Shown here: piece after piece, positions 8,621 to 22,773 of the stretch | Numbering within the stretch: position 1 is the stretch's first letter | How the letters are laid out: the number at the start of each line of letters is the position of its first letter | Assembly: GCA_964036045.1 (NCBI GenBank) | Contig: OZ038379.1 | Coordinates: 1,736,001 to 1,800,000, forward strand | From: Eutreptiella sp. 'Long Island Sound 2002' | Taxonomy: Eukaryota; Protista; Euglenida | Direction: 5' to 3' | DNA length: 64,000 nucleotides | Program-made: the position numbers and the translations under genes | Notes under the pieces: model-generated | Told to the model about the DNA's origin: nothing | The model's input: the letters and a program-made list of their open reading frames with translations, nothing else | The model's database searches: none

Positions 8621-11329
8621 TGTGTACCTTGCCGTGCATGGTTCATGGCTAACCGTCGCCTATGGGGAGGATGATTTTACGTAGACGGCCTACGGAACAT
8701 TCCATAGCCGTCGTGTGCGGCGACCTCAAGGCAACGTTTTGCGATGATATGGCTTGCGCTGGAGTGTAGCAAGGAAAAACAAAGTGCTATGAGTTGTGAT
8801 TATGACCGTATGCCCATGTCACGAGGGCATATGCAAGCTCAATATCCGTTGCTCATGACTTCAGCAGCTTTTGGCTTGCACAGGCGAACCTTGAAAGTTT
8901 GAGTGAACAGCTTATGAGTCTTTTTAGTTTCGTTCAACCTTGGCATCTTGCTCGACGCACACGCACTTGCTCTCTTATGGATAGCGCCCAAGCGAAGAGC
9001 AGACAAAGTGTGTTGAACAACCATGGAGGAAGGAAGGAAATGAGGTGAGTTGTGGCACCACACAGCCTCACCGGCAGAGCCACCGCTCAACGATTCCACG
9101 GATCGCAAAAAAAAACACCAAAACTACATCCAGCTCCGTCATTGGGGAACACGAAGCGCCCGAAGGGACGATCATCTCCATGGACCACGACACTAAACAA
9201 AACCACTACGAGCCTCTGGGGTTGAAATGTACCCCCAGGGCAACCCAAGCCACGTGCATGCGGACTATGGTAATGTAACGATGCTGCTACCCTGATCATC
9301 CCCTCCCAATTAGTGCCCAAGGCGCCGGCAAACGTGACGTTCGGCGCGTCCTGGCCATCCTTGGGGTGGTGGGGTTTTTTCACCTTTTTGTGGATTCACT
9401 GTGTTGGAACAGGCGATGAGAGGAATCCACATCCTATGCATAAATGCTGCCGCACCACTTTTTAACTCGTGGGGTTGTGGGGTTCTTCACCTTTTTGTAG
9501 ATTCAACGACATCTATGCTGAAGTCTCATCAAGAGGAGCCCCTTCTCGCCAGGGGACTATGAGTCCGAGTCCTCACTAGAGCGTGGGGCATGCGTCGTGT
9601 CACTATTGGTGCTTATCCATCGCGCCCAAGTGAAGTAGGGGGGTTGGTAGATTTCCCTCCCTGGATCATGGTCTCACAAGCACAAAAGAATCTCAGGCAC
9701 ATGCTCCATCACTGGCTGCTGGTGGGCTATGGGTTCAGTATGGTGTGAGTGTCCGTGAGTGTATAGAAACACCTCGTTGTATAGGGCAGGCAGGCGGGCC
9801 ATGATCACCAAAATATAAAAATACTCTGAAATCAGATATCCACATGCATGGGAAATCCGGTGGTTCCCTGAATTTTCCTCCCTGGATTCTGGTCTCACAA
9901 GCACAACACAAACTAAGGCACGTGCTCCATCACTCTCCGCGCCCATCCCACCGAGGAACGTGTCTGTGCAGGTAGTAGCATGCAGACATGGGCATAAGTT
10001 CTGTGCTTCTAGGACTGTGGCGATGGACCCTTCCAAGTCTCTTCGGTGTCAAGACCCCTAAGGGCTTCATATCATGTGTAAAATCACTCGTTCGTCTCCT
10101 GCCTTGGACCCATGTCACGCGTGTACAGTACATCCGAGCGGTATTTAACTCACGTCCTCGAGTACACGCCCAAAGAAGCATGTCATGTTCTCAGGGACAC
10201 TCATCGATGTACCTGTGTCATTGCTGCTTCAGCATGCTACCCACCCCTCCGGGGACCGTGTCACTACAAGTACTTGCATCCACACATGGGCTTAACAACT
10301 GAGCGTCTGAGCTTGTGGGGTTGGTCCCATCCATAGACCCTCGGTGGCATGACACGAAAGGGCTTTGGGATCCGTGTAAAGACACGGGTACGTCGCCTGC
10401 ATTAGACCCATGGCTCGCCTTTACAGTGCCTCGCAAGAGTACGATACTACCGTCCTCCCGGGCACTCGCAAAGGAGCATGTCATGTCCTTAGGGACACTC
10501 GGCGAGGCACCCGTGTCAGTGTTGCTCAAGCGTACTGTCTAATGCATGGCTCTGTAATCAAAAGTGTATATACTACACGCAGTGCGTCGCCCAAGATTGG
10601 GTCACATTGTCGGAATAGGACTTGTTCGAAACGGCGCAAGATATCGGGCATTCCCGAAAACCAAATGTGGTGATAAGCCCTGGCCTAGTTGGCAGAACCG
10701 GAAACTGGTGTCCGTCCGCCTGGGGTAGGGACAATCAAGGAGACCTCCCAATCAAAGTCGTGAAGTTGCAATGTGTCTTTGCGGATCCATTGTACCAGCA
10801 TGTTCTCGCATACCCTCTGTTTCAGAGGCCACATCACCTAGACAAGTAGGGAGTACATTTCATGCTTCAACCTCACCTTTGGATCCCCTCTCGTCCTGAC
10901 AACCTCAATCGTCCTTCTGGCTTCCGAGCTAATGTGCAGTCCTGCCCAGATTCTTTGATTGTGCCTCCAGATCATCGCGTCAAGTGTGAGTCTCGGCGTC
11001 TCAAATGCCTCCTGCTCCACTTCTGCCAAGTGTCATATGGCCAACACCTTGAAGCGCTGTCTTTCCGGTTGCGGCTTAGGCCTTTCATCTTGCGCCTTTG
11101 GTGGCATGACACCAAGGGGCCTCGGCTCACATGTGAAAACATGGGCATGTATAAAATGATGTGGCATGGAGGCCAGTACTTGCTAGGCGCGGTTGCAAGT
11201 GGAAGAGGTGTGGTCATACCCCTGCCGAGCCCATGTGGTTCAGTTGTCGGACATCGGACATGAGGGTTCCCCACTTGGACATAGCGTCTATTGTCGCCCT
11301 GGTTAGTGATTTCCGGTCGGTCCCCTTCA

Positions 11330-11700
11330 ACCTGGACAGGGGATCCGCCAGCATCATCTCTTATTTGACCCCAAACAAATGCCACAGGGCCCCACACCAC
11401 CGGAGCCTGTTGAAGATCCTACGTAGCATTTTGTTCTAGGTGACAGCCCCCGGTGTGGTAGACAGCTTCTTAACCCTGGCAATGGCCGCCATGTTATCCC
11501 CCACCACGTTGGCAGGGCTCCATCCACATTTTTCCACTAGGCTGGTGGTGTACCCTATGCCCTAGAGTTCTCCCTATTGCTGATTCTGCGACATGAAGGT
11601 TCAGCACCTAAAAGCTCCGTTGCTAGGCGACACACCCACTCTGTGCAGTCCCCCCCCGCCTTTGTGGCGTCTACTGCCACCCAAGGTGCAAGCGGGGGGG
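11330..11700 (-). pseudogene. DIRS-type RNase H
   Basis: PWVAVDA (first Asp), DNMAAI, and MLADPLSR motifs across frameshifts and stops. Confidence 0.75.
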
Positions 11701-11829
11701 GGGGGGGGCAGCAGATATTGTCCCATGCACAGGCAGTGTCCCACTTAGGAACGCATCCACCATGCTGAGGGTCATAATGCGTGAGGGCGTGCGAGCGCAC
11801 GTGAACCCTGTAGACTTCCACCCGTACTA

Positions 11830-12650
11830 ACCAAACGTGAACGCCGTCATGCCTAGCCGGGGCCCAAACAGCCACTGAAGCCGACCTATTACCCTCTCCA
11901 CTGTTTTTGGCGTCAGCTTGGACACCGCTGCCCTTACCACTACCGCCAGCGCCTTGCGCATTGTTCCTGGAGTGTTGTGCACTGTCCCTCTGGCTCGGTC
12001 AAAAGTGTTACCAATCCATGTGACCAGCGCCGACGAATCCGTGTGGCTTTTGCTGCTTATCAATAGTGGCTGCGCTTGCCACAACTCGCACAGACTGCAC
12101 CTGACCACCCGCAACAGGGCTGTGTCCCTTGCCAAAAGCAGGATGTCATCCAGGTAATGGAAGTACACCACCCCACTTCAAGCGAACCTCTCCACGCATC
12201 GCTTGATGAGGTCCCCCGGTGTTCCTTGGGCAATAAGCGGGGAGTAGTTCCACCCAAATGGAAGTGAGTGAAAGTCCGCGCGTCTTCCAAGCGGAAGAGG
12301 TCCCTCACCACATCAAGCATCCTCGACGACGAGTAGAAATTCGTCAGGTCGGCGGTGGTTCCAAACATAGGGCCTCGCCGTCTCATTGGTTCTATCCTAT
12401 TGAAGATCTCCGCCACCGTCGAGAGTGGGGACTTGCGCAGTTTGATTGTGCATTCCTTGATCAGGTTGTGCAGGTCCACGATGAAGGCGCAGTTTTGCGC
12501 GTTCTTTGGCTTCACAAATGCACAGCAGTTGCTGTCCATGTCGCTTGCCCGTGCGTGCAGGAGGCCATCCGTCAAGAGCGCCTTGCATGAGAGCTTACAT
12601 AGTTTTGTAAGCGGGTGGACTAGGTACTTGGACATTTGTGTTTTCCAGTT
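11830..12650 (-). pseudogene. Reverse transcriptase of YR-retroelement type
   Basis: AFVKPKN...FIVDLHNL, TADLTNFY, YFHYLDDILLL, VTWIG and IGRLQW motifs in ORFs 12060-12725 and 11827-12171 (frameshifted). Confidence 0.9.
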
Positions 12651-13369
12651 TTGGATCTGAGTAACCACCTTTGAGAAGACACAGCTGCGGTCCTGATCTC
12701 CAGGGGCGCGCCATAGCTCCCACATAGCCCAATTCCTGCATCTGCCATGTCGTCGGATACAACTCCTTCCCTTGGCTCTCCGTCGGATCCATCGTAATCG
12801 TCATCCAAAAGGTCCCAATCCATACTCGACAGTTGCTCTATGGCATGTACAAGAGTCTTCATCCACGGTCCTTGTGTGTGATATTCGTAAAACCGTTTGC
12901 GTGCTCTAAATGAGACCAGCTGCGGCGCCCGGATGGTTTCCGAGCAGGGCACCTTCAGCCCATTCGCCACCCCACGTGAAAGTTTCCACGGCAGGGCTCC
13001 GCAATGTTTATCAGGAGGCCGTGCATTGCGGCAACTAGCCGGGTCCAGGCAGGTGGTCCACTTTGCGGGGTGCTGCCAGCCATCATCAACCAGATTAGGC
13101 CCTTGCCCGACAACGGCGCTTCTTCATGGGCATTCGTCGGCGGGGTCAGGCCTGGGTGTCATTGCCCCCCGAGGTACTTGCGCTTCATTGTCCAATGTCT
13201 CTGCCGTCAATACTATCGCTGAGAACGTTGTTGGGGAAGAATTCCGCTTGCCGGACATCGGGGACTGCAAGTCTACATGACCTCTTCGCGAACATGTCCT
13301 TGCTGACGAGATTTGGGGCGCTGGACCATTGGGAGACAAATTTGATTGTCCCTTCTTCTGCGCACTCCG

Positions 13370-14200
13370 CATACCCCTTGGCCGCTTGTGTGGACTGCCA
13401 TATGCACCACGCCTTGATGCTAGGCAAGGGGGTTCCTGCAAGGTACGGGGTTGCCGCGCAAAGTCGGCCCGGTCCATGCCAGCGGACCTCCTGGAACTTT
13501 GACCCTGCGAGTAGCTTGGCCATGACCCGTTCGGGCTGCCGCGGCCCACTAAAGGTTTTGTCCTGCTAGGTGCAGCCGAACTTTCAGATTGCCCACCAGT
13601 GTAAGAACCGGACATATCTAAGCGCCTAGGGCCCCAATGTCCGGGAGTACGTTATGCGGTTGACCTTCTCGTTCCAGAACGTGATGGTGCCTCTCATTCT
13701 GTCCAGTCCTCTCACCTTGATCCCCGCCATTTCTCCGACGCGTTGTCCTGCCACCATCGACACTACCGCTGCCGCCAAGACCGCCCACTCAATAGGGTGC
13801 CGAGCCTGGGCAGCCATTGTCTGCAGGGCCTCAACCGATGCCCACGGGACCTTTGTCTCGTCCCACGCATTCTCCGCTGTCCCCTCTTCTGTGCTCTCTT
13901 GACATACTTCCAGAAGAATTTGGGCACTGTACGTTTTGCGATTCCCATAGACACCGCCCATGTTGCCGCTAAGAGGAATGGTTTGGTGGTGCTTAGGATC
14001 CTCCCCATGGTCATTTTTTCTTGTTGCCCAAGGATCTTCCATTCTGGCTCTTCTTGGGCTGCGGTATGCTTTCTTCAGAGCTTTCGCAAACCTGAATGCA
14101 AAAGCTCCCACTGATGACGTCTTCCAAGCAAGCGCTAGTAGGGTCGCTTGTTCGGAGGTCCACCAGCTCTGCGTTGTTGTAGGATGCCTTCCAGACTGAC
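13370..14200 (-). pseudogene. Tyrosine recombinase
   Basis: Box I AGQRVGEMAGI in ORF 13626-14327. Box II remnant WHGPGRLCAA...AWCIWQSTQAAKGYA (H-x-x-R...W...Y) in ORF 13185-13523. Confidence 0.85.
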
Positions 14201-15949
14201 TACCGCAATGCGGTAAGTTGGCCATTACTCCAAATTCCCGATTGATTTTCTTCTTCTGACCGGTAATTGTCGTCGCTCCCGTCTCCTCCGGCACCGTCTC
14301 TGTTGTGCCATGTTGTCTGGCTAACACACTGTGCTTTTGCTAGTTCTGTCCCGGTCACATGACACTGAGACATTTCTCGCCCCCTGCGGCATGACGCAGC
14401 GGTTTTTCCTTCCGATTCTCCCGTCTCTCCGGGATCCGTCTCCAAGACAAATAGAGGGCCCAAGCTCACTCCATCGCCTGGGATCTCGTCTCGTCAAACC
14501 ACGTCGCACGTCCAGACCCAGTGTCCTTTTCCGTATTCTGTGCACTTCTCTGCCGGGTCATTTTGCACATTGTAAGCATCGCCTGGTTTCATCATGTAGG
14601 AGTTGTCCCCCTCATACTCGATGAACCACAAGTACCCCGTTTTTGTTTTTTCTCTGTACCTGTCCTGCCTTGTCCACCATCTGCTCCATCAACACGTTAT
14701 GCTTTTTCTTGGGTCGAGTTCCTTGCGACTGCAAATTCCTTCCTACATGTTCTTGGCGATGGTTTGATTTCTGGTGGTACTTGCTTGCATAAGATTCTTT
14801 TGTACCTTTTTTTCTTTTGGCGCCACATAAGTTCGAAGTTCAAAGTCTGACTATGAACAAAGAAGGGGCACACATAGGCAGGTTGCCTAGCATCAGTCCG
14901 GCCGTTGTAACTATAGCCACAGGCTTCGTGCGGGTTATACAAGTCCATCGAGGACGCCTGTGGGGACAAGTTTGCAAAGGCGGAGCACAAGAACACTGCA
15001 CAGAACTTGGGGCAGCAGTACAATGTATCACCTAGACCGGCGATGCCGGCGATAGAATGCTGACCCTGCCCTCCAAGAGAGCCATGGCTGCCCGCATATA
15101 AAGCGGACGCAGTCCCAGCGCACAGCGGTCAACGGACGAGACTGACACTACACAAGTACCAGGGAACGAAAAAGTCACCCCCTCAACATGTCAGACTGCC
15201 GCCACCTGAGACGGTGATCATTCTGGACCCAACCACACGCAACCATGGTACCCAATAAAGGGCGGGGTGCAGCATGCAACCCCCCCAAACAAAACGAGAC
15301 ACGGTTGGGGTCCGCCGGGCGGACGGCCGAGCCCAGAAGCGGTGCGGCCGCCGTGGGTGGGTGGGCGGTAAAAGACAGAAAAACTGCCTAAGAAAGGAAG
15401 CGCAAACAAAAGTTGAAACGAGGTTCAACTAGTGTTTGCAAAGGCGGAGCACAAGAACACTGCACAGAACTTGGGTATTCATTCTCCGCCGCAACCCTCC
15501 CTGCCCCCCCCCCCCCCAGCCCTAGCCACGCACTGGTGCCATCAGGAACCCGCTGGGCATAGCCCCGCTGGGGAACCTGAAGGGTTGAAACTGAGTCCTA
15601 AAACCCCTCTGATTCCTAACCCCCCCCCCCCAACCCATAAAACTCCCCATGGGCCTTAGGGCCGGCACCGCAAGTCAAGACAGCCAAAGCGACGGGCGAT
15701 ACGGGCTGTATGCTCCCGGACCCACACACGGTGATGGCGACACAGCGGCAACAGCATCGGATCCGTCAGCGCCGAGTAGGGCTGCAGGTGGGCGCCCGGC
15801 TGCTCTGCAGCCAAACGGCCACGGCGCCGGGCGCAACTCGGCCAAGCCGAGGCTCACTCAGCAACTCAGCAACGAACCAAGATCCATAACACCGGCCTTA
15901 GGGCCAACAGTGCAGGTAGCCAGATGGGGCTTTGGCTCAACAAAGTGCT

Positions 15950-16530
15950 TACGTTGGCGGTGCTGGTGCCGCGACCGTCATTGCTGTTGGTCCCGTTGCT
16001 ATCAACGCCAGTGCTCGAAGCATCCACGACTTAAGAGGGCGTGTGGATCGCGTCGCGCATCGAGAGGGCGGCGGCGAGCAACATCTGCGCCAGTCCTTCA
16101 GCGACGTCGCTGCCAGTGCCGCTGCTCATGTTCCCGCTGTTGCCAATGCCACTGCTCGAAGTTCCACGCCTGCAGGTGATGTGGCGACATAAAGGCAACC
16201 ACACCGCTATTGCCACCGCCAGAACTGCTGGTGCCGCTGCTGCTGCCGCCAGCGTCACCGCTGCTGGTCCGACTGCCGCCAATGCCAGAGTCTGATGGCT
16301 CAATACCTGCAGATTGTGATGGCGATACAGAGGGAAAACCACTGCTGCTGCCGCGGCTGCCAGAGCTGCTGGTGTTGCTGGTGCCAGATTCACCGCTGCT
16401 GGTCCCGCTGCCGCCAACATCGGGTGTTGATGCTCCTACCACTGCACATGGTGACGGCGATAGAGAGGCAACACCACTGTTGCCGCCGCTGCTGCAAAGC
16501 TGCCACCGCGGGTGCTGGTGCTGCCAGTGT
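15950..16530. repeat. Degenerate ~130-bp tandem repeat (3-4 copies), GCT/GCC-rich
   Basis: Recurring gtga(t/c)ggcga..gag.g.aa.cac.ctg...gccgc...ctgctggtg at ~16180, ~16315 and ~16450. It reads as AAVTLAA...VVxPLYRHH or as S/G-rich depending on frame. Confidence 0.7.
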
Positions 16531-17089
16531 CACTACCCCGGCGGCGGTGGTGAAGGACCCGACCGAGCGCAGCGTCAAACCGTCGTGCGCAAGCGCCTCC
16601 AGCGCAGGGGCCCTCTGCAGCGACGCAAGCAGGCCGCACTGCACCCACTGCACCGCAGCGTCGAGCCCGTTGTTGAGCTCCTGCAGGTCCGTTGTCGAGA
16701 AGGCCTGGGCGTGCGTGTCCACCTCCGTCTTGAAGGCCGCCACCGACTGCGCCACAACCTCCGTCGTGCCGTTGGCCGTGAGCTGCAGGACTGCCACAAT
16801 GTCTGCGACCAGCGTGGTGACCTCGGATGAGCGGCTTGAGCCGCAGAACCATGTCCACAGCGTACTCGACATTGTGCACGACCGCCGGCAGCAGCGCCGG
16901 GCCCCGCCCCGCGTCCGCCAGGGCCTTGACCTCGGCGATGGCGGGGGTCAGGCCCACGAGCACCGCACTCTCGACGGTGGCCGGGCCGCGGTCAACCAGC
17001 CCCTTCTCAACCCCCGCGATCTGCTTCATGCGGTCCAAAAAGGAGCCGCAGCACCCGCTTGTCGCCTCAGCATGCTGACCCGCCGGCAC
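16430..17089 (-). pseudogene. Cargo ORF of unknown function inside the GTT element (frameshift near 16830)
   Basis: Strong GC3 coding-like bias, unlike the surroundings. MKQIAGVEKGLVDRGPATVESAVLVGL...LRLKPLI continues after a frameshift as SEVTTLVADIVAVLQLTANG...LRSVGSF. No family recognised. Confidence 0.55.
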
Positions 17090-17298
17090 CGGCCCTCGGG
17101 CCCATGGGGAGAGGGCAGAACACTACCCCCCCCCCCCTACAAATTAAAGACAGAAAAACTGCCTAAGAAAGGAAGCGCAAACAAAAGTTGAAACGAGGTT
17201 CAACTAGTGTTATCCCACAAGTCGGCTGACAGTGGTGTGCAGATCTGCTCTGCCACCGGCATTGGCTGCCCAGTCCGAAGTTTCAAGTGATGGTTTTT

Positions 17299-19053
17299 CT
17301 AGTGTGTTGGTAGCAAGCCAAGGGTCACGTGCGGTGGGAGTTGCAAGGTATCGCACATAGCCGCGGTCAACCACGTGTCCTTGTCCCCCAGCTTATGGGT
17401 CATCATAGCAGCCCATGTGCGGAACTTATGGTAGGGCAGCTGCTGGTGGCTAATGTTGGCCCGGGCAACTGCGGCCGAGTGGGGGAGCGCAAGGCGCAGC
17501 GCCAGCTCAAACATTTGTATATGCCGCAGGAACCGTGTGGTTAGGCGGCGCAGGCTGGACAGTGTGCCCAAAAGGAAACGTTGACGTGCGCGGTGCGCTG
17601 CATAGAGCGTCACGCGAACACTATGGTGGAACCAAAACCGCGTGCGCTGAGCGTACACGGCGAGCACCCTAGCGCAGGCGTCCACGTGTGAGGCCCATGT
17701 CACTGCCACCCCGACACTAACCTTTCGTTGCGCCAGGATTCCGCGCACGGTTTCCCTGATGAGTGATTGAGCCGTCTGCATCAGATTATTGGCCGCCATG
17801 TAGGTTGCGCCTGTCACCGGTCGCCACGGTTTTGTGGGGGTCACGGACGGCGTCAAGTGCATGCCTGTGTCGAGGAAGGTTTCCGCACAAGTGAGTCCGT
17901 CCCCGGTCAACACCGGTAAAGCCCTGATTACCATGCACGCCCTTGAAACGGTATATGGTTGACGCAGGAGTTTCGTCACCGTGCGCCTAGTTTCCAGCCT
18001 ATGATCTCTTTTGGGTTTTGCAGACCTTTGTTGGCTGCCAGCCACCGCGCGTTTTCGGGGGTTGTAGTGGCATTGTCGGACAAGGTGTTCCTCGGTAGGG
18101 GGCGAGCACTGGGCCCTGCGGCGAAAGGCCGTGGACCAGATGGCCGTTCCGCCCGATGAGGAGCGCGGCTCCTCGAGCGAGTTCTGCGGCATGGGAAGGT
18201 TGTGGCGTAGCTCACCAGCCAGCTTTATGCACTGGTATTGGTGCACCGCGACCCTGTACCGGAAATCAAGCATGTGGTCGGGCGGGATTAACTCCACAAG
18301 AGACAGGGGAATGTGGAACTTCGCTACACGGGCAAGGTCGTCATAAGTGGCTGTAGAGAGCCACTGCCGGGCCATTGGCTCCCAGGGTCCCCAGGTTTTC
18401 GCCCACTCGTCCACGAACAGTGTCCTCCATGCCCCACGCTGCACAAGGCATGTCTGCGCCGTTCCTTGGTGTGTGGATCCACACAGAGCACATGGTTGGG
18501 CCCATTTCTTCCATGGAGGCATGCACCCTCTCCACCACACGTTTCCCCACACCCACTGAAGCCACAGCCTGCGGCGCTCTCCCTTTAAGGGCAGCCAAGT
18601 TGCCCAGTGCGCCCCCTCCGGTGTGGCATGTGGGCGCATTGCCGTGCTCCACTTTTTTGCCGGCGTGGGTGCCTCCGTGCCTCCCACACCTATGCCATGC
18701 GGCGCATCTGGTGTGTATGGTGTCAATGGGGGCTCGCTTCCCATGGAAGCCAACGAGTCGGAAAGGTTATTTCCCCGTATGTCTTGGGCTTCCTCAGGCG
18801 TCCGCGCCTCATGTTCTTCCCGGTGGCCTGGCACCCACCCCGGCACCAGTGACTTGCGTTGGAGCGCCTGTGCTAATGGCTGGCGGACGTCCACGCCAGA
18901 GACTTCATGGTAAGGAGCGGCTGCAGCACAATCCGCTGCGGCCTGATTGTCTAAAACCACCTCGTCACCAGCTCGTGCCAGGCAGGAAGCGACATACATG
19001 CCAATGAGTTCCGCCCGGTACGGGGTTTGAGGACCCCGCACTCGTCCAATCAC
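17299..19053 (-). CDS. Open 584-aa C-terminal part of LINE ORF2 (RNase H, knuckle, unknown extension)
   Basis: Uninterrupted ORF with RNase H motifs in the first ~100 aa and CALCGSTH near aa 185. Part of a pseudogenised element. Confidence 0.75.
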   Translation of the reverse strand: MIGRVRGPQTPYRAELIGMYVASCLARAGDEVVLDNQAAADCAAAAPYHEVSGVDVRQPLAQALQRKSLVPGWVPGHREEHEARTPEEAQDIRGNNLSDSLASMGSEPPLTPYTPDAPHGIGVGGTEAPTPAKKWSTAMRPHATPEGAHWATWLPLKGERRRLWLQWVWGNVWWRGCMPPWKKWAQPCALCGSTHQGTAQTCLVQRGAWRTLFVDEWAKTWGPWEPMARQWLSTATYDDLARVAKFHIPLSLVELIPPDHMLDFRYRVAVHQYQCIKLAGELRHNLPMPQNSLEEPRSSSGGTAIWSTAFRRRAQCSPPTEEHLVRQCHYNPRKRAVAGSQQRSAKPKRDHRLETRRTVTKLLRQPYTVSRACMVIRALPVLTGDGLTCAETFLDTGMHLTPSVTPTKPWRPVTGATYMAANNLMQTAQSLIRETVRGILAQRKVSVGVAVTWASHVDACARVLAVYAQRTRFWFHHSVRVTLYAAHRARQRFLLGTLSSLRRLTTRFLRHIQMFELALRLALPHSAAVARANISHQQLPYHKFRTWAAMMTHKLGDKDTWLTAAMCDTLQLPPHVTLGLLPTH

Positions 19054-20489
19054 GTGCAGTGGCCCGCAGTGAAGTCTGAAACTTGCTCAGCAGTCGCATG
19101 TGGCGCCCCCCCTACCCGCCAGATAGCCTTTTCTACTTCCATCTGTGTACCATGTCGTCCGTTGCGGATCACAACCGTTGGTGTAGACTTCGCAACCCCC
19201 TGCCACAGTGGGTTGGTAGCGTGCCGGGACCTGTCCTCCTTCCACGACATGCCACCGCGGTTTGGCAAGCCCTTACCGGTGCGCTGTGTCCTCTTGGCCG
19301 CCTGGGGCTATTTTATTGTGGATCATGCGACCGTCCTCCGTGTCCTCGCTGTCGATAAGACTCGGACCCGCGGGACGGCGACGGGGGTGCTTTAGCAATA
19401 TGCACGAGATTGCTCCCGTGAATTCAACAAAGTCACGTACGCAAGAAAAGGCGTCTGGCTACGTTCCACTGATGTGTTGAGGGAGACCCGAAATGCTTGG
19501 TGCTAGTGACGGACGGTCTGCTGCATGGTGGTGATGAAGCGCCGTCGGTAGGCCCATTACAGCTGATGCAGCCCCATGCCTCCGCAAGATACAGGGGCAC
19601 TGAGTTGTTTGATATTCCGTCCCGGGACCATACCTTTAGGTTGGCGTACAAACACCGAACACAGGCCGTCTACCTCCTTGTACCACCTGTCCGAGGGAAT
19701 GAGCACCGCCCGGTGGGGCCACCTAGGCATCAAGATGGAGTTGACCACCTGTTTTCGTTCCCAGCCATCCATGGGAATATGCGCATACTGAGCCAGGTCC
19801 GACGTAATCAAGTCCAGGTAGTCCGACCGCGCCTTGTGTGCCCACCGTGGGTGTGCAATGATGTGTCCCAGGTAGCTGAGGATGGGAGGTCTGACAGTAT
19901 TAACCTGTCCGTCCCACAGTAGCTGGTCCACCTTGTAGGTCGCCGACCAACAGTACACCTCTGTTTTTCCTTTGTTCACATGGAAGCCCTGTGTGTTGTC
20001 CAGGTCCGTGACCCTCCTTAGCACGGACAACGTAGTCGATCGGTCCGGCGAGACAAAGGCCACATCATCCATGTACGTGTAGAAGTGGACGGAGGGGAAT
20101 TCTGCCGCTAGCGTTCCGTGAAACATCTCGTACACCACGCAAACGAGTAGGGGCGTGAGGGGACATCCCTCTTTCGCTCCCCTCCTCTGGTGGTCTTTTC
20201 GCCATCAACCCGATAGTTGCACCGTGTCCCTTGGTATGCGTACTGCATCATGGAGATGTAGCGCTCTGGTACCCCCACCTGCTGCATTGCAGCCCACAGC
20301 AGTGGGTGGGGGGTGCTCGGATACGCTTTGGCGATATCTAGGAGCACCACGTCCGGTGCTCGTGGCATGCTGAGCGCTGACGACCACAATTTTGTAGCCT
20401 AGGACAGTGTGGTATGTCCCCTTCGTCCTCTAGCTTGGTGCTCGGATAGTACTCCGGTGAGAGGTTTCTTGGTGCGCCTCAAGATCACA

Positions 20490-20659
20490 TGCAATGGATC
20501 CTATATAGAAGAGTCTGTGAGGTATGGAACCAAGGACAGATCCTGACAGAATGGACCGATGCCCGAATATCGTTGTTGTATGAGAAGGGCGATCCCGGGG
20601 ATGCAAGCAACTACCGTCCTATAGCGATGTCCACATGCATGTACCAAATTACCACGAAG
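20490..20659 (+). other. 170-bp internal inversion in the LINE RT
   Basis: The RT segment (M)QWILYRRVCEVWNQGQILTEWTDARISLLYEKGDPGDASNYRPIAMSTCMYQITTK is on the plus strand. The flanking RT (QWLPEK.. before, ILRRTKKPL after) is on the minus strand. Confidence 0.9.
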
Positions 20660-22773
20660 TTTTCTCCGGTAGCCACTGTATTGTGTGCGGCGGGACCCCG
20701 TCCATTCCCATTGACTTTTTCTTGGGCTGATTGGCCGTCTCCTGGAACCCGCGCCACGTTTGTAGGGTCTGACCCACGGGAGCTCCTGGCACGCGGAGAT
20801 TTGGCAACATATTGAAGGTCTTCTCTGGATCCCATTGTGGATCTCCCGCAAAATCGGGCAGCTTTTTGGTTGCCGACGCCACACTGGGAGACATGGTGCA
20901 AACGTGGGCAGGCTTCACAAGCCACGTGGCGAGCTCCGCGAAGAACGTCCCTGTGCCCCCAATTGCGGATTTGCGGAAACGGCGCAGTTTCTTCATCACC
21001 TCCTTGTGGTGTTTGCGTTGCATATGTTCACCCCATTGTTTGAGTGCGGCCTGGCCACAAGGGTTCTTGGGGAGACGGGTCTGCAGATCCTCATGAGCCT
21101 GGTACGGTCGTCCGTTTGGCTTCTTGTGTGCAGCGACGTACCGCGCGACCTCTTTCAGCACCATATTGCTGGCAGTCTCCATGGTCATGTTTTTGGGGAC
21201 AGCCCGGTACGATCTCCCCATATGTGCGCGGAAGCGCTTCAGATCTCTACCCGTCCAGTCGCGGATGCTGATGACCTCGGGATCTGGGGACTGTGGCTTG
21301 GGGAGCACGACCGCGGTGTTTTCAACACCTGCGTGGTCGCCTCCCAACGGGAACGTGGTAGCTTGGTAGACCCGGCGTGAGTGCATTCCATGTTGTTTGT
21401 GACAGCAGGAGCGCGTCCAGGCGTTTGCCCCCTCGGGTGTGGCTCGGGCCAAGCGGTTAAGGCACCGTTTGGTATTGCGGGTCAACAAGGCGTCCGGAGT
21501 CGAGCGAGTCGTGCCATATCTTCCTGCGACGTGGCCTTGCGTGCCAAATTCCGTCATTGAAGCCTCCTCTAACGATGCCCACATTGGGAACAGACGCAAT
21601 CCAGGCGTCTAAGGCCTCCCTTTCCGGTAGGGTGAACAAACCATGCTGGTTCACGAAGGTGAATTCGGGTACGCCTGGGATCTGGACGCAGAGAGCAATA
21701 GCATGGGGCGAGCGGTGCGTAAGATTCTTTTGTACCCCACATTGCTGCCCTGACTTCATTCCTCAGGAACTGGATCAGTTTCCGCCCTTCCGGCCCTTCG
21801 GGTTCCTTAAATTGCGGCACGAGGGCGGCTCCGAGCTTCTCCATCCACTTTGGGACACCCTCTTCCGAGAGCAGGATTTCCATCGCTTCTTCCGACGGTT
21901 TTGGGCGCACCTTTTCCTTTTTATGCTCTCCCTGTTTGGACTCAAGTTCTTTTGTGCGCCTGCTCAGCTAAACCACCACGGGAGCAGAGTTCTTTCCACC
22001 CTCCGCTTGTTTGGCGCTCCGCACAAAAGTCACATTGGCCTTGGACCCTACAACTCGGATTTCAAATCCCTTTTCCGTATAAAAGGCATATGATGCCAAC
22101 ACTCGCAAGGTGTCCTGGTCTATGAACTCTAGGTCCTCTAACATTGTTGGGATCATGTCCCTAAGGATGTATTTCTCCACTCCCGCATTTGCCATCTTGA
22201 GGCCCACTTCCGCTGATACTTTGGCCAGGATTGGTCCATCCACCGCCGAAAGAACCACCTCAAACGCGACTGCCACGAAGTTTGAGAGTTCCTTAATCAA
22301 ACCCTAGTCCAAGCTAACCCTCGTCACATCTCGACTCTACTGTCCCGCCCCTTCCGCCAAGGGTCCGAATTCACCAGATCGGATGTCGATTCTTTGCGCA
22401 TGGGCCGCTTCGTAGGTAGAGATCGCCTTCAGTAACTGGGAATCATCGCCTGTCAATCCGCTGTCTTCTCTGGGCCATTCCTCCTTGTCCACGACCGCAT
22501 CTCTGATTTTGTCCAAGACCTCCACTGCGGCTCTGGACAGCCAGTCGACTGCTTTGTTGTTGATGAAGGTTTGGAGCTCTTGAGTGAGTACCAACTAGAT
22601 GAATGTGGGCCCTGCTTCTTTATTCATCAGCATGCAGTAAGGAGGGGCGAGCAGTGATCACCCAAATATTAAAATATTCTGAAATCACATATGCACATGC
22701 CCGAGAAATGTGGCGATTCCCTACTGTGAATCCCTCACTTTGGCCAGATTGAGCTGTCTCCTTCTCTCCGTTG

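Follow-up and report, generated by a model that had tools for sequence, protein, structure and literature searches.

The window, which is the whole stretch of 64,000 nt that was analysed (C2:1736001–1800000 of a 2.28-Gb eukaryotic assembly), contains an insert of 2,242 bp that interrupts a host retroelement. The insert carries two short sequences, X and Y, each of which is present twice. Y is 42 nt long and lies at 14970–15011 and 15434–15475, and X is 66 nt long and lies at 15371–15436 and 17146–17211; in both cases the two copies are 100% identical. X and Y share GTT by overlap at the internal junction, and their order is Y..X-Y..X. This layout and the full identity of the repeats had been claimed in an earlier reading made from the letters alone (hereafter, the sequence-only reading), and both were confirmed by the coordinates and by a control with shuffled versions of the window, where the X/Y ends gave 0 matches and the pattern is thus not due to chance. 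No terminal inverted repeats were found in the insert by the repeat analysis of the window, again as claimed. The features of the locus are as follows.

14807–14969 (start approximate), minus strand: left flank, the 3' terminal part of the interrupted host retroelement, which adjoins the right flank in paralogs
14970–17211, minus strand (probable sense strand): the whole non-autonomous element with split direct repeats, 2,242 bp, delimited by end-to-end alignment with its copies
14970–15011, minus strand: Y copy 1, repeat B2, the 3' terminal repeat in the sense direction, opening with the element-derived GTT; 100% identical to 15434–15475
15012–15370, minus strand: short segment between A2 and B2, present in all copies
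15371–15475, minus strand: internal X-GTT-Y junction (B1-A2), 105 nt, found at 100% identity at at least 24 places in the genome
15476–17145, minus strand: long interior of 1.67 kb, containing repeats, with no recognisable gene and no Pfam family
17146–17208, minus strand: X copy 2, repeat A1, the 5' terminal repeat in the sense direction; 100% identical to the X copy at 15371–15436
17209–17211, no strand assigned: target-derived GTT, the sole GTT of the empty site as read from 24 paralogous empty sites; the bases at this place differ between copies
17212–21600 (far boundary approximate), minus strand: right flank, the body of the host retroelement, with a reverse transcriptase and RNase H-like ORF (RVT_1 match in 19557–20138)

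The sense strand of the insert is probably the minus strand, because its ends are homologous to the termini of the ORF-bearing relatives described below. The assignment is then A1 = X', B1 = Y', A2 = X' and B2 = Y', and the insert reads A1 (X') – 1.67 kb – B1 (Y') A2 (X') – 0.36 kb – B2 (Y'). As in the split-repeat arrangement of the DIRS order, A1 equals A2 and B1 equals B2 at 100%, with B1 and A2 adjacent at the junction, and the same holds in other copies.

The genome contains many copies of the insert. The 1,731 genome candidates for the junction are first-look word matches and not copies. All of the 30 loci centred on the junction that were aligned to the window matched it at 94–99%, through the junction and into both interiors, and most of them had their left boundary at 14970; alignments ended early only at truncated or interrupted elements or at the edge of the fetched stretch. 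In 20 loci with longer flanks, the copies were 2.03–2.26 kb long and had a terminus of CTAGTG followed by two variable bases. Copies elsewhere are ~98% identical to the insert from end to end, where the boundaries are exactly 14970 and 17209–17211. The mean pairwise divergence among 14 full copies is 1.5%, and the repeat pairs within an element differ by 0–3 mismatches. Exact X ends (18-mer) occur 313 times genome-wide, with a next base other than G at only 2 of them, and this count suggests that the ends are intact in roughly 150 elements of the genome. The Y sequence is also carried inside another repeat, where it always follows CCTGAT.

Both interiors are present together and in constant order in all copies read without truncation or interruption. 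Because the two parts were never seen apart and the mean divergence is 1.5%, the insert is one young split-repeat element and not two stacked cassettes. This was the first alternative of the sequence-only reading, a single 2.24-kb element of the form A1..B1A2..B2, which is supported by the 30 loci, the 14 full copies and the relatives; its description as young is also borne out by the divergence and the few mismatches between repeats. The second alternative was that two independent cassettes of 467 bp and 1.78 kb with like ends would form an integron-like head-to-tail stack at the regenerated core. The internal junction is identical to a circle junction, a locus at C2:20073988 shows a head-to-tail arrangement, with TTTGCA coming again after an X end, and like ends surround other interiors in other families. 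However, the parts are joined in constant order in 30/30 junction loci as well as in the 14 full copies, the autonomous relatives are built of the same two parts and carry their genes in the long one, and the recombinase encoded next to the insert is unrelated. The only candidate for a single unit (L092) proved to be an ordinary copy that has lost 54 bp at the junction. The hairpin that had been pointed out in X is just half conserved: in the autonomous relatives, one pair is retained through a compensating change and one pair is broken, so that the claim stands only in part. We therefore regard the independent cassettes as highly improbable.

It is hardly credible that the insert is not itself mobile, that is, that it represents leftovers of longer elements or was spread passively by segmental duplication. 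The additional occurrence of Y inside another repeat is in favour of this explanation, and one insertion was indeed copied by segmental duplication (L035 and L036, 0.49% apart with identical flanks). Apart from this duplicated pair, however, the flanks of the copies are mutually unrelated and the boundaries are exact and identical, and clean empty-site paralogs exist for the copy in the window.

In the paralogs of the host repeat, homology resumes at 17212, and the two flanks are separated by GTT alone. The contiguous empty site GACAA-GTT-ATCCC, which the sequence-only reading had predicted, is present in 24 of the 27 paralogs read. The accompanying remark that the empty site restores an open frame has no weight, since the open stretches lie on differing strands and frames between paralogs. 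A second empty site is provided by a locus at C5:11.48 Mb, where a relative of 6,558 bp is nested inside a copy of the insert's family. The corresponding site is uninterrupted in the window at 16811–16822 (...CAGCGT^GGTGAC...), and when it is occupied, its left side is ...CAGCGT-GTTTGC... and its right side is ...CTAGT-GGTGTC.... The two empty sites agree with each other: the insertion is scar-free and produces no target-site duplication, as had been proposed, where the left trinucleotide is the GTT of the element and the right trinucleotide is that of the target.

The ends of other copies define the target. The left end is G-TTTGC in 24/25 fetched copies and in 27/27 true left ends listed genome-wide, and the base preceding it is T in 15/27 (p = 4e-4). 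Among 53 right ends listed, the trinucleotides were GGT (12), GAT (11), GTT (10), GAA (10) and GGA (4), followed by the rarer GTA (2), GGC (2), GAC (1) and GCT (1), where this tally was read by eye from a pattern listing and the larger end counts were likewise taken from pattern listings. The right trinucleotide departs from base composition at the second base (p = 1e-4) and at the third base (p = 5e-14). The right end is thus the target's own G-(A/G/T)-(T/A), which is GTT in ~19% of insertions. Because the right end is GTT in just about one of every five copies, a single G is all that the element and its target share. These left-end, preceding-base and right-trinucleotide counts give (T)^G-D-W as the target, which loosely resembles T-GTT at the junction and has G as its only invariant base. 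Insertion thus occurs without duplication at a short sequence common to the circle junction, and the GTT core that had been described at all three positions is particular to the target in the window. The inverted repeats that had been noticed on both sides of the target reflect a weak general tendency, with a mean best arm of 4.8 nt at targets and 3.8 nt at controls (p = 0.02, 13 sites).

The 1.67-kb interior contains two copies of a ~135-bp repeat coding for Gly/Ser at 16232–16495, together with more diverged repeat pieces from ~15957 to 16525, and it is bracketed by a 28-nt inverted repeat at 15643–15670 and 17084–17111. The Pfam search of the insert's interior matched no family, and a comparison of ORFs across the copies of the insert showed no long ORF shared by them and no ORF retained beyond the level expected by chance in GC-rich DNA. 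The most protein-like ORF of the interior (16390–16872, minus strand) matched only copies of itself in a protein search of an ENA assembly of the same species. The insert is non-autonomous because it has no ORF for a recombinase or for a reverse transcriptase and RNase H.

Similar ends also enclose other DNA. A second element class with a junction-to-end spacing of ~1.35 kb, about equally common among the matches listed, has X/Y ends that are 96–97% identical to those in the window, and its different interior consists mostly of 36-bp tandem repeats. At C1:11748250–11753800, 4.8 kb of unrelated DNA lies between similar ends, and the distance from the junction to the next X end is 4.9 kb; this locus was rejected as an autonomous copy, having no reverse transcriptase, no long ORF and an unrelated interior. 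The ends are modular, since like ends enclose differing interiors, and no cargo gene was seen in the interiors examined. The idea of variable cargo is correct in that unrelated interiors are present between like ends (L091, L089), but these interiors are tandem repeats or other DNA with no recognisable genes.

Autonomous relatives of 5.7–6.6 kb with the same Y..X-Y..X layout were found, whose termini and junction are 83–88% identical to X/Y. In the orientation of the window, their genes are on the minus strand in the order gag-like, tyrosine recombinase, reverse transcriptase and RNase H-like, and the repeat matching X is located ~10 nt upstream of the gag start. The reverse transcriptase matches RVT_1 in Pfam (E = 1.4e-12), and the RNase H-like ORF gives a weak match to RVT_3 below the Pfam cut-off (E = 0.0024). 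The recombinase ORF of the C5 element contains the motifs LRVGEA..IR, K, HALRRGG, WGRW and AMQY, and the corresponding R, K, HxxR, W and Y are kept across subfamilies that are 32–42% identical to it. Sequence and profile searches of Pfam and PDB with this ORF were blank or not significant, with XerA (E = 1.2) as the sole PDB profile match. Its AlphaFold model is poor (mean pLDDT 50); in a Foldseek search with this model, 33 of the 36 listed matches were tyrosine recombinases and 2 were type IB topoisomerases, with a best E-value of 0.028. The motifs and these weak structural matches suggest that the ORF is likely a tyrosine recombinase.

The junctions of the relatives align with that of the window, where CAACTAGTGTTTGCA is invariant around the crossover, and the conservation extends ~30 nt past X and 14 nt past Y. 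Exact ends of the relatives number 647 genome-wide, with G as the next base in all 100 listed and with right ends of G-D-W, and their junction-to-end spacing is ~6.1 kb. The insert and the relatives share only ~200 bp: the 1.67-kb interior is unrelated to any sequence of the relatives, and the short segment at 15012–15370 resembles them at its two edges only. The ENA assembly ERZ25074135 contains three more relatives of 5.7–6.6 kb with diverged ends. A further locus of the ENA assembly (L087) was considered as an autonomous copy with X/Y-type ends and was rejected for having almost no similarity. An element with the genes gag, tyrosine recombinase, reverse transcriptase and RNase H (L081) was likewise set aside as a different family; it has no similarity to X, Y or the interior, and its repeat pairs are of 85 bp and 53 bp with a 5-bp overlap at the junction.

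Genome pattern searches found no autonomous copy with ends identical to X/Y, the one match being a mutated ordinary copy, and a genome-wide pattern linking the relatives' gag start to an X-type end gave 0 matches. An autonomous recombinase element with the same termini, which the sequence-only reading had proposed to look for, was thus found as relatives with 83–88% identical ends, but not as a copy with identical ends. Since no such copy was found, we infer that the partner of the insert may be a cross-mobilising relative, an unsampled element or an extinct one.

As for the recombinase gene adjoining the insert, to which the sequence-only reading had linked it, the ORF is located at 13626–14327 on the minus strand. 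The element that contains it (10000–14806) was rejected as the partner, because it resembles the insert neither at the nucleotide level nor in translation, and lacks related terminal repeats. The two families are unrelated and other copies of the insert have unrelated flanks, so the adjacency is, as judged from these comparisons, probably a coincidence. The ORF is 29% identical to the recombinases of the relatives over the first arginine motif.

Taken together, the insert is very probably a non-autonomous member of a tyrosine-recombinase (DIRS-order) retrotransposon lineage with split direct repeats. Cryptons are elements that have a recombinase only, without reverse transcriptase and without long terminal repeats. 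The insert would accordingly be a non-autonomous Crypton-like DNA transposon if it moved as an excised double-stranded circle without reverse transcription. Its scar-free insertion at a short core suits such a mode, and circles with a complete site could be freed if the directly repeated junction sequences recombined with each other. However, the relatives with homologous ends encode a reverse transcriptase and RNase H, and the number of copies (~150) and their divergence of 1.5% indicate that the family grew by copy-and-paste. The insert, moreover, has split direct repeats, which is the layout for the rebuilding of ends after reverse transcription (PMC6681497, PMC9210276). This DNA-only mode is therefore quite unlikely.

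For a member of the retrotransposon lineage, by analogy with the model for DIRS, Ngaro and VIPER, a minus-strand transcript would be made from the insert and copied in trans by the reverse transcriptase of the relatives. The internal B1-A2 junction would then serve as a template on which both ends are restored and linked, giving a circle with CTAGT-GTT-TGCA. The proposal of the sequence-only reading that the internal X-GTT-Y has the sequence of a circle junction agrees with the junction at 15371–15475. Finally, the recombinase of the relatives would cross the circle junction with a genomic (T)-G-D-W site, beside the single shared G. In the published model, recombination of the target with a 3-bp junction leaves no duplication (PMC3266345; PMC7192593, section 26), and split direct repeats together with the non-autonomous SIRE have been described in VIPER (PMC6681497).

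The insertion itself is precise, has no duplication and only one shared G, and the trinucleotides are inherited one-sidedly. Two routes could account for this one-sidedness: the crossover may be limited to the position of the G, or a single strand may be exchanged and the rest left to replication. The latter takes place in integron attC x attI recombination and in the integration of CTX phage. Because one end invariably has the GTT of the element and the other the G-D-W of the target, with one G shared, the recombinases might exchange one strand only or use a single-stranded cDNA circle, with replication finishing the process, although we consider this unlikely. If it were true, modular ends of ~200 bp could be enough to move whatever interior lies between them.

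The insert resembles SIRE, the companion of VIPER in Trypanosoma cruzi (PMC6681497), in that it is short, gene-less and multi-copy, and has terminal sequences in common with a gag-YR-RT/RH retrotransposon; the host of SIRE and the euglenid host of the insert both belong to the wider lineage Euglenozoa. Unlike SIRE, which equals the A2-B2 region of VIPER, the insert keeps the full A1..B1A2..B2 structure and a 1.67-kb interior unrelated to the relatives, and its ends are only 83–88% identical to those of the nearest autonomous copies found. The gene order of the VIPER/TATE group, gag - YR - RT/RH, is found in the autonomous relatives only. With Ngaro and PAT-like elements (PMC9210276, PMC3266345), the insert shares the repeat topology, where the long part is first and the short part is last, and the absence of a target-site duplication. 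However, the recombinase follows RT/RH in those elements and precedes it in the relatives found here, and the insert encodes nothing.

Integration at a trinucleotide matching the circle junction is also a property of DIRS1-like elements (PMC3266345 Table 3; PMC7192593). These differ from the insert in having inverted terminal repeats and an internal complementary region instead of split direct repeats, whereas the target here needs only G-D-W and equals GTT in a minority of insertions. Because PMC3266345 Table 3 lists DIRS1-like entries with start GTT and end GAT and similar pairs, which are single elements or consensus sequences, the end asymmetry is visible in published data as well. A 2026 preprint (10.64898/2026.05.21.726589) makes mention of DIRS-like elements in Euglena gracilis. 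Our literature search found no description of the insert's family or of its non-autonomous members. To our knowledge, non-autonomous companions of tyrosine-recombinase retrotransposons have rarely been described, with SIRE as the textbook case, and we know of no direct test so far of the integration step in this order of retrotransposons.

The design is that of the textbook DIRS/Ngaro/VIPER elements, and the insert is an analogue of SIRE; it is of an ordinary kind, with an insertion-site rule that is unusually readable. The ~150 young copies and ~300 autonomous relatives, with their exact ends and readable empty sites, form a natural data set, from which the target rule (T)^G-D-W and the strict asymmetry of the ends can be read directly. 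They can aid repeat annotation in a large euglenid genome, and they offer concrete substrates for the biochemistry of target choice and cutting by the recombinase of a eukaryotic retroelement.

Ends of the X/Y type (the 66-nt X and 42-nt Y repeats of the 2,242-bp insert) also enclose other interiors in the genome. A second non-autonomous class is exemplified by the locus at C4:3020700-3022900, with X and Y ends that share 96-97% identity with the window's, and many of the junction-to-end distances among the genome-wide X ends listed lie near 1.35 kb, as in this class. Its interior is unlike that of the insert in the window; a Y-like fragment from the autonomous family comes first, and approximately 0.8 kb of 36-bp tandem repeats follows it. 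The long interior of the insert is flanked by a 28-nt inverted repeat (window 15643-15670 and 17084-17111), the arms of which are 86% complementary and contain CCATGGG, and a similar inverted-repeat pair surrounds the different interior of the 1.35-kb class. A further locus, C1:11748250-11753800, has 4.9 kb of unrelated DNA, with no long ORF, between an X-like end (approximately 90% identical) and a site resembling the junction. The locus represents a separate family or, alternatively, a copy that nested insertions have filled.

Copies of Y are also found in another abundant genomic context, where CCTGAT always precedes them. In a genome-wide pattern search read by eye, approximately 45 of the 100 exact matches to Y that were listed first had this arrangement. 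In one example (C1:16955300-16963300), Y is followed by 250 bp and a truncated X, and the second Y is absent; therefore, a fragment of the short segment of the insert family seems to be carried inside another repeat.

In the window, the insert is adjacent to an element belonging to a different family:

10000-14806, minus strand, neighbouring element in which RT-like ORFs lie downstream of a recombinase-like ORF (13626-14327)

On the other side, the matches of the right flank to paralogs of the host retroelement, which the insert splits, break at query positions 127/128 (window 17338/17339), where the paralogs have approximately 300 bp absent from the window copy. Farther away, weak poly-C matches are spaced by approximately 1,092 bp (32980, 34072, 35169, and onward to 53720), which suggests that a long tandem array, with repeat units of approximately 1.1 kb, occupies window positions of approximately 31900-54000.

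Elsewhere on the same contig, at C2:20073988 and 20075760 (minus strand), one copy has TTTGCA again after its right-hand X end, forming a head-to-tail arrangement, as would be expected if a circle junction recombined with a resident end.
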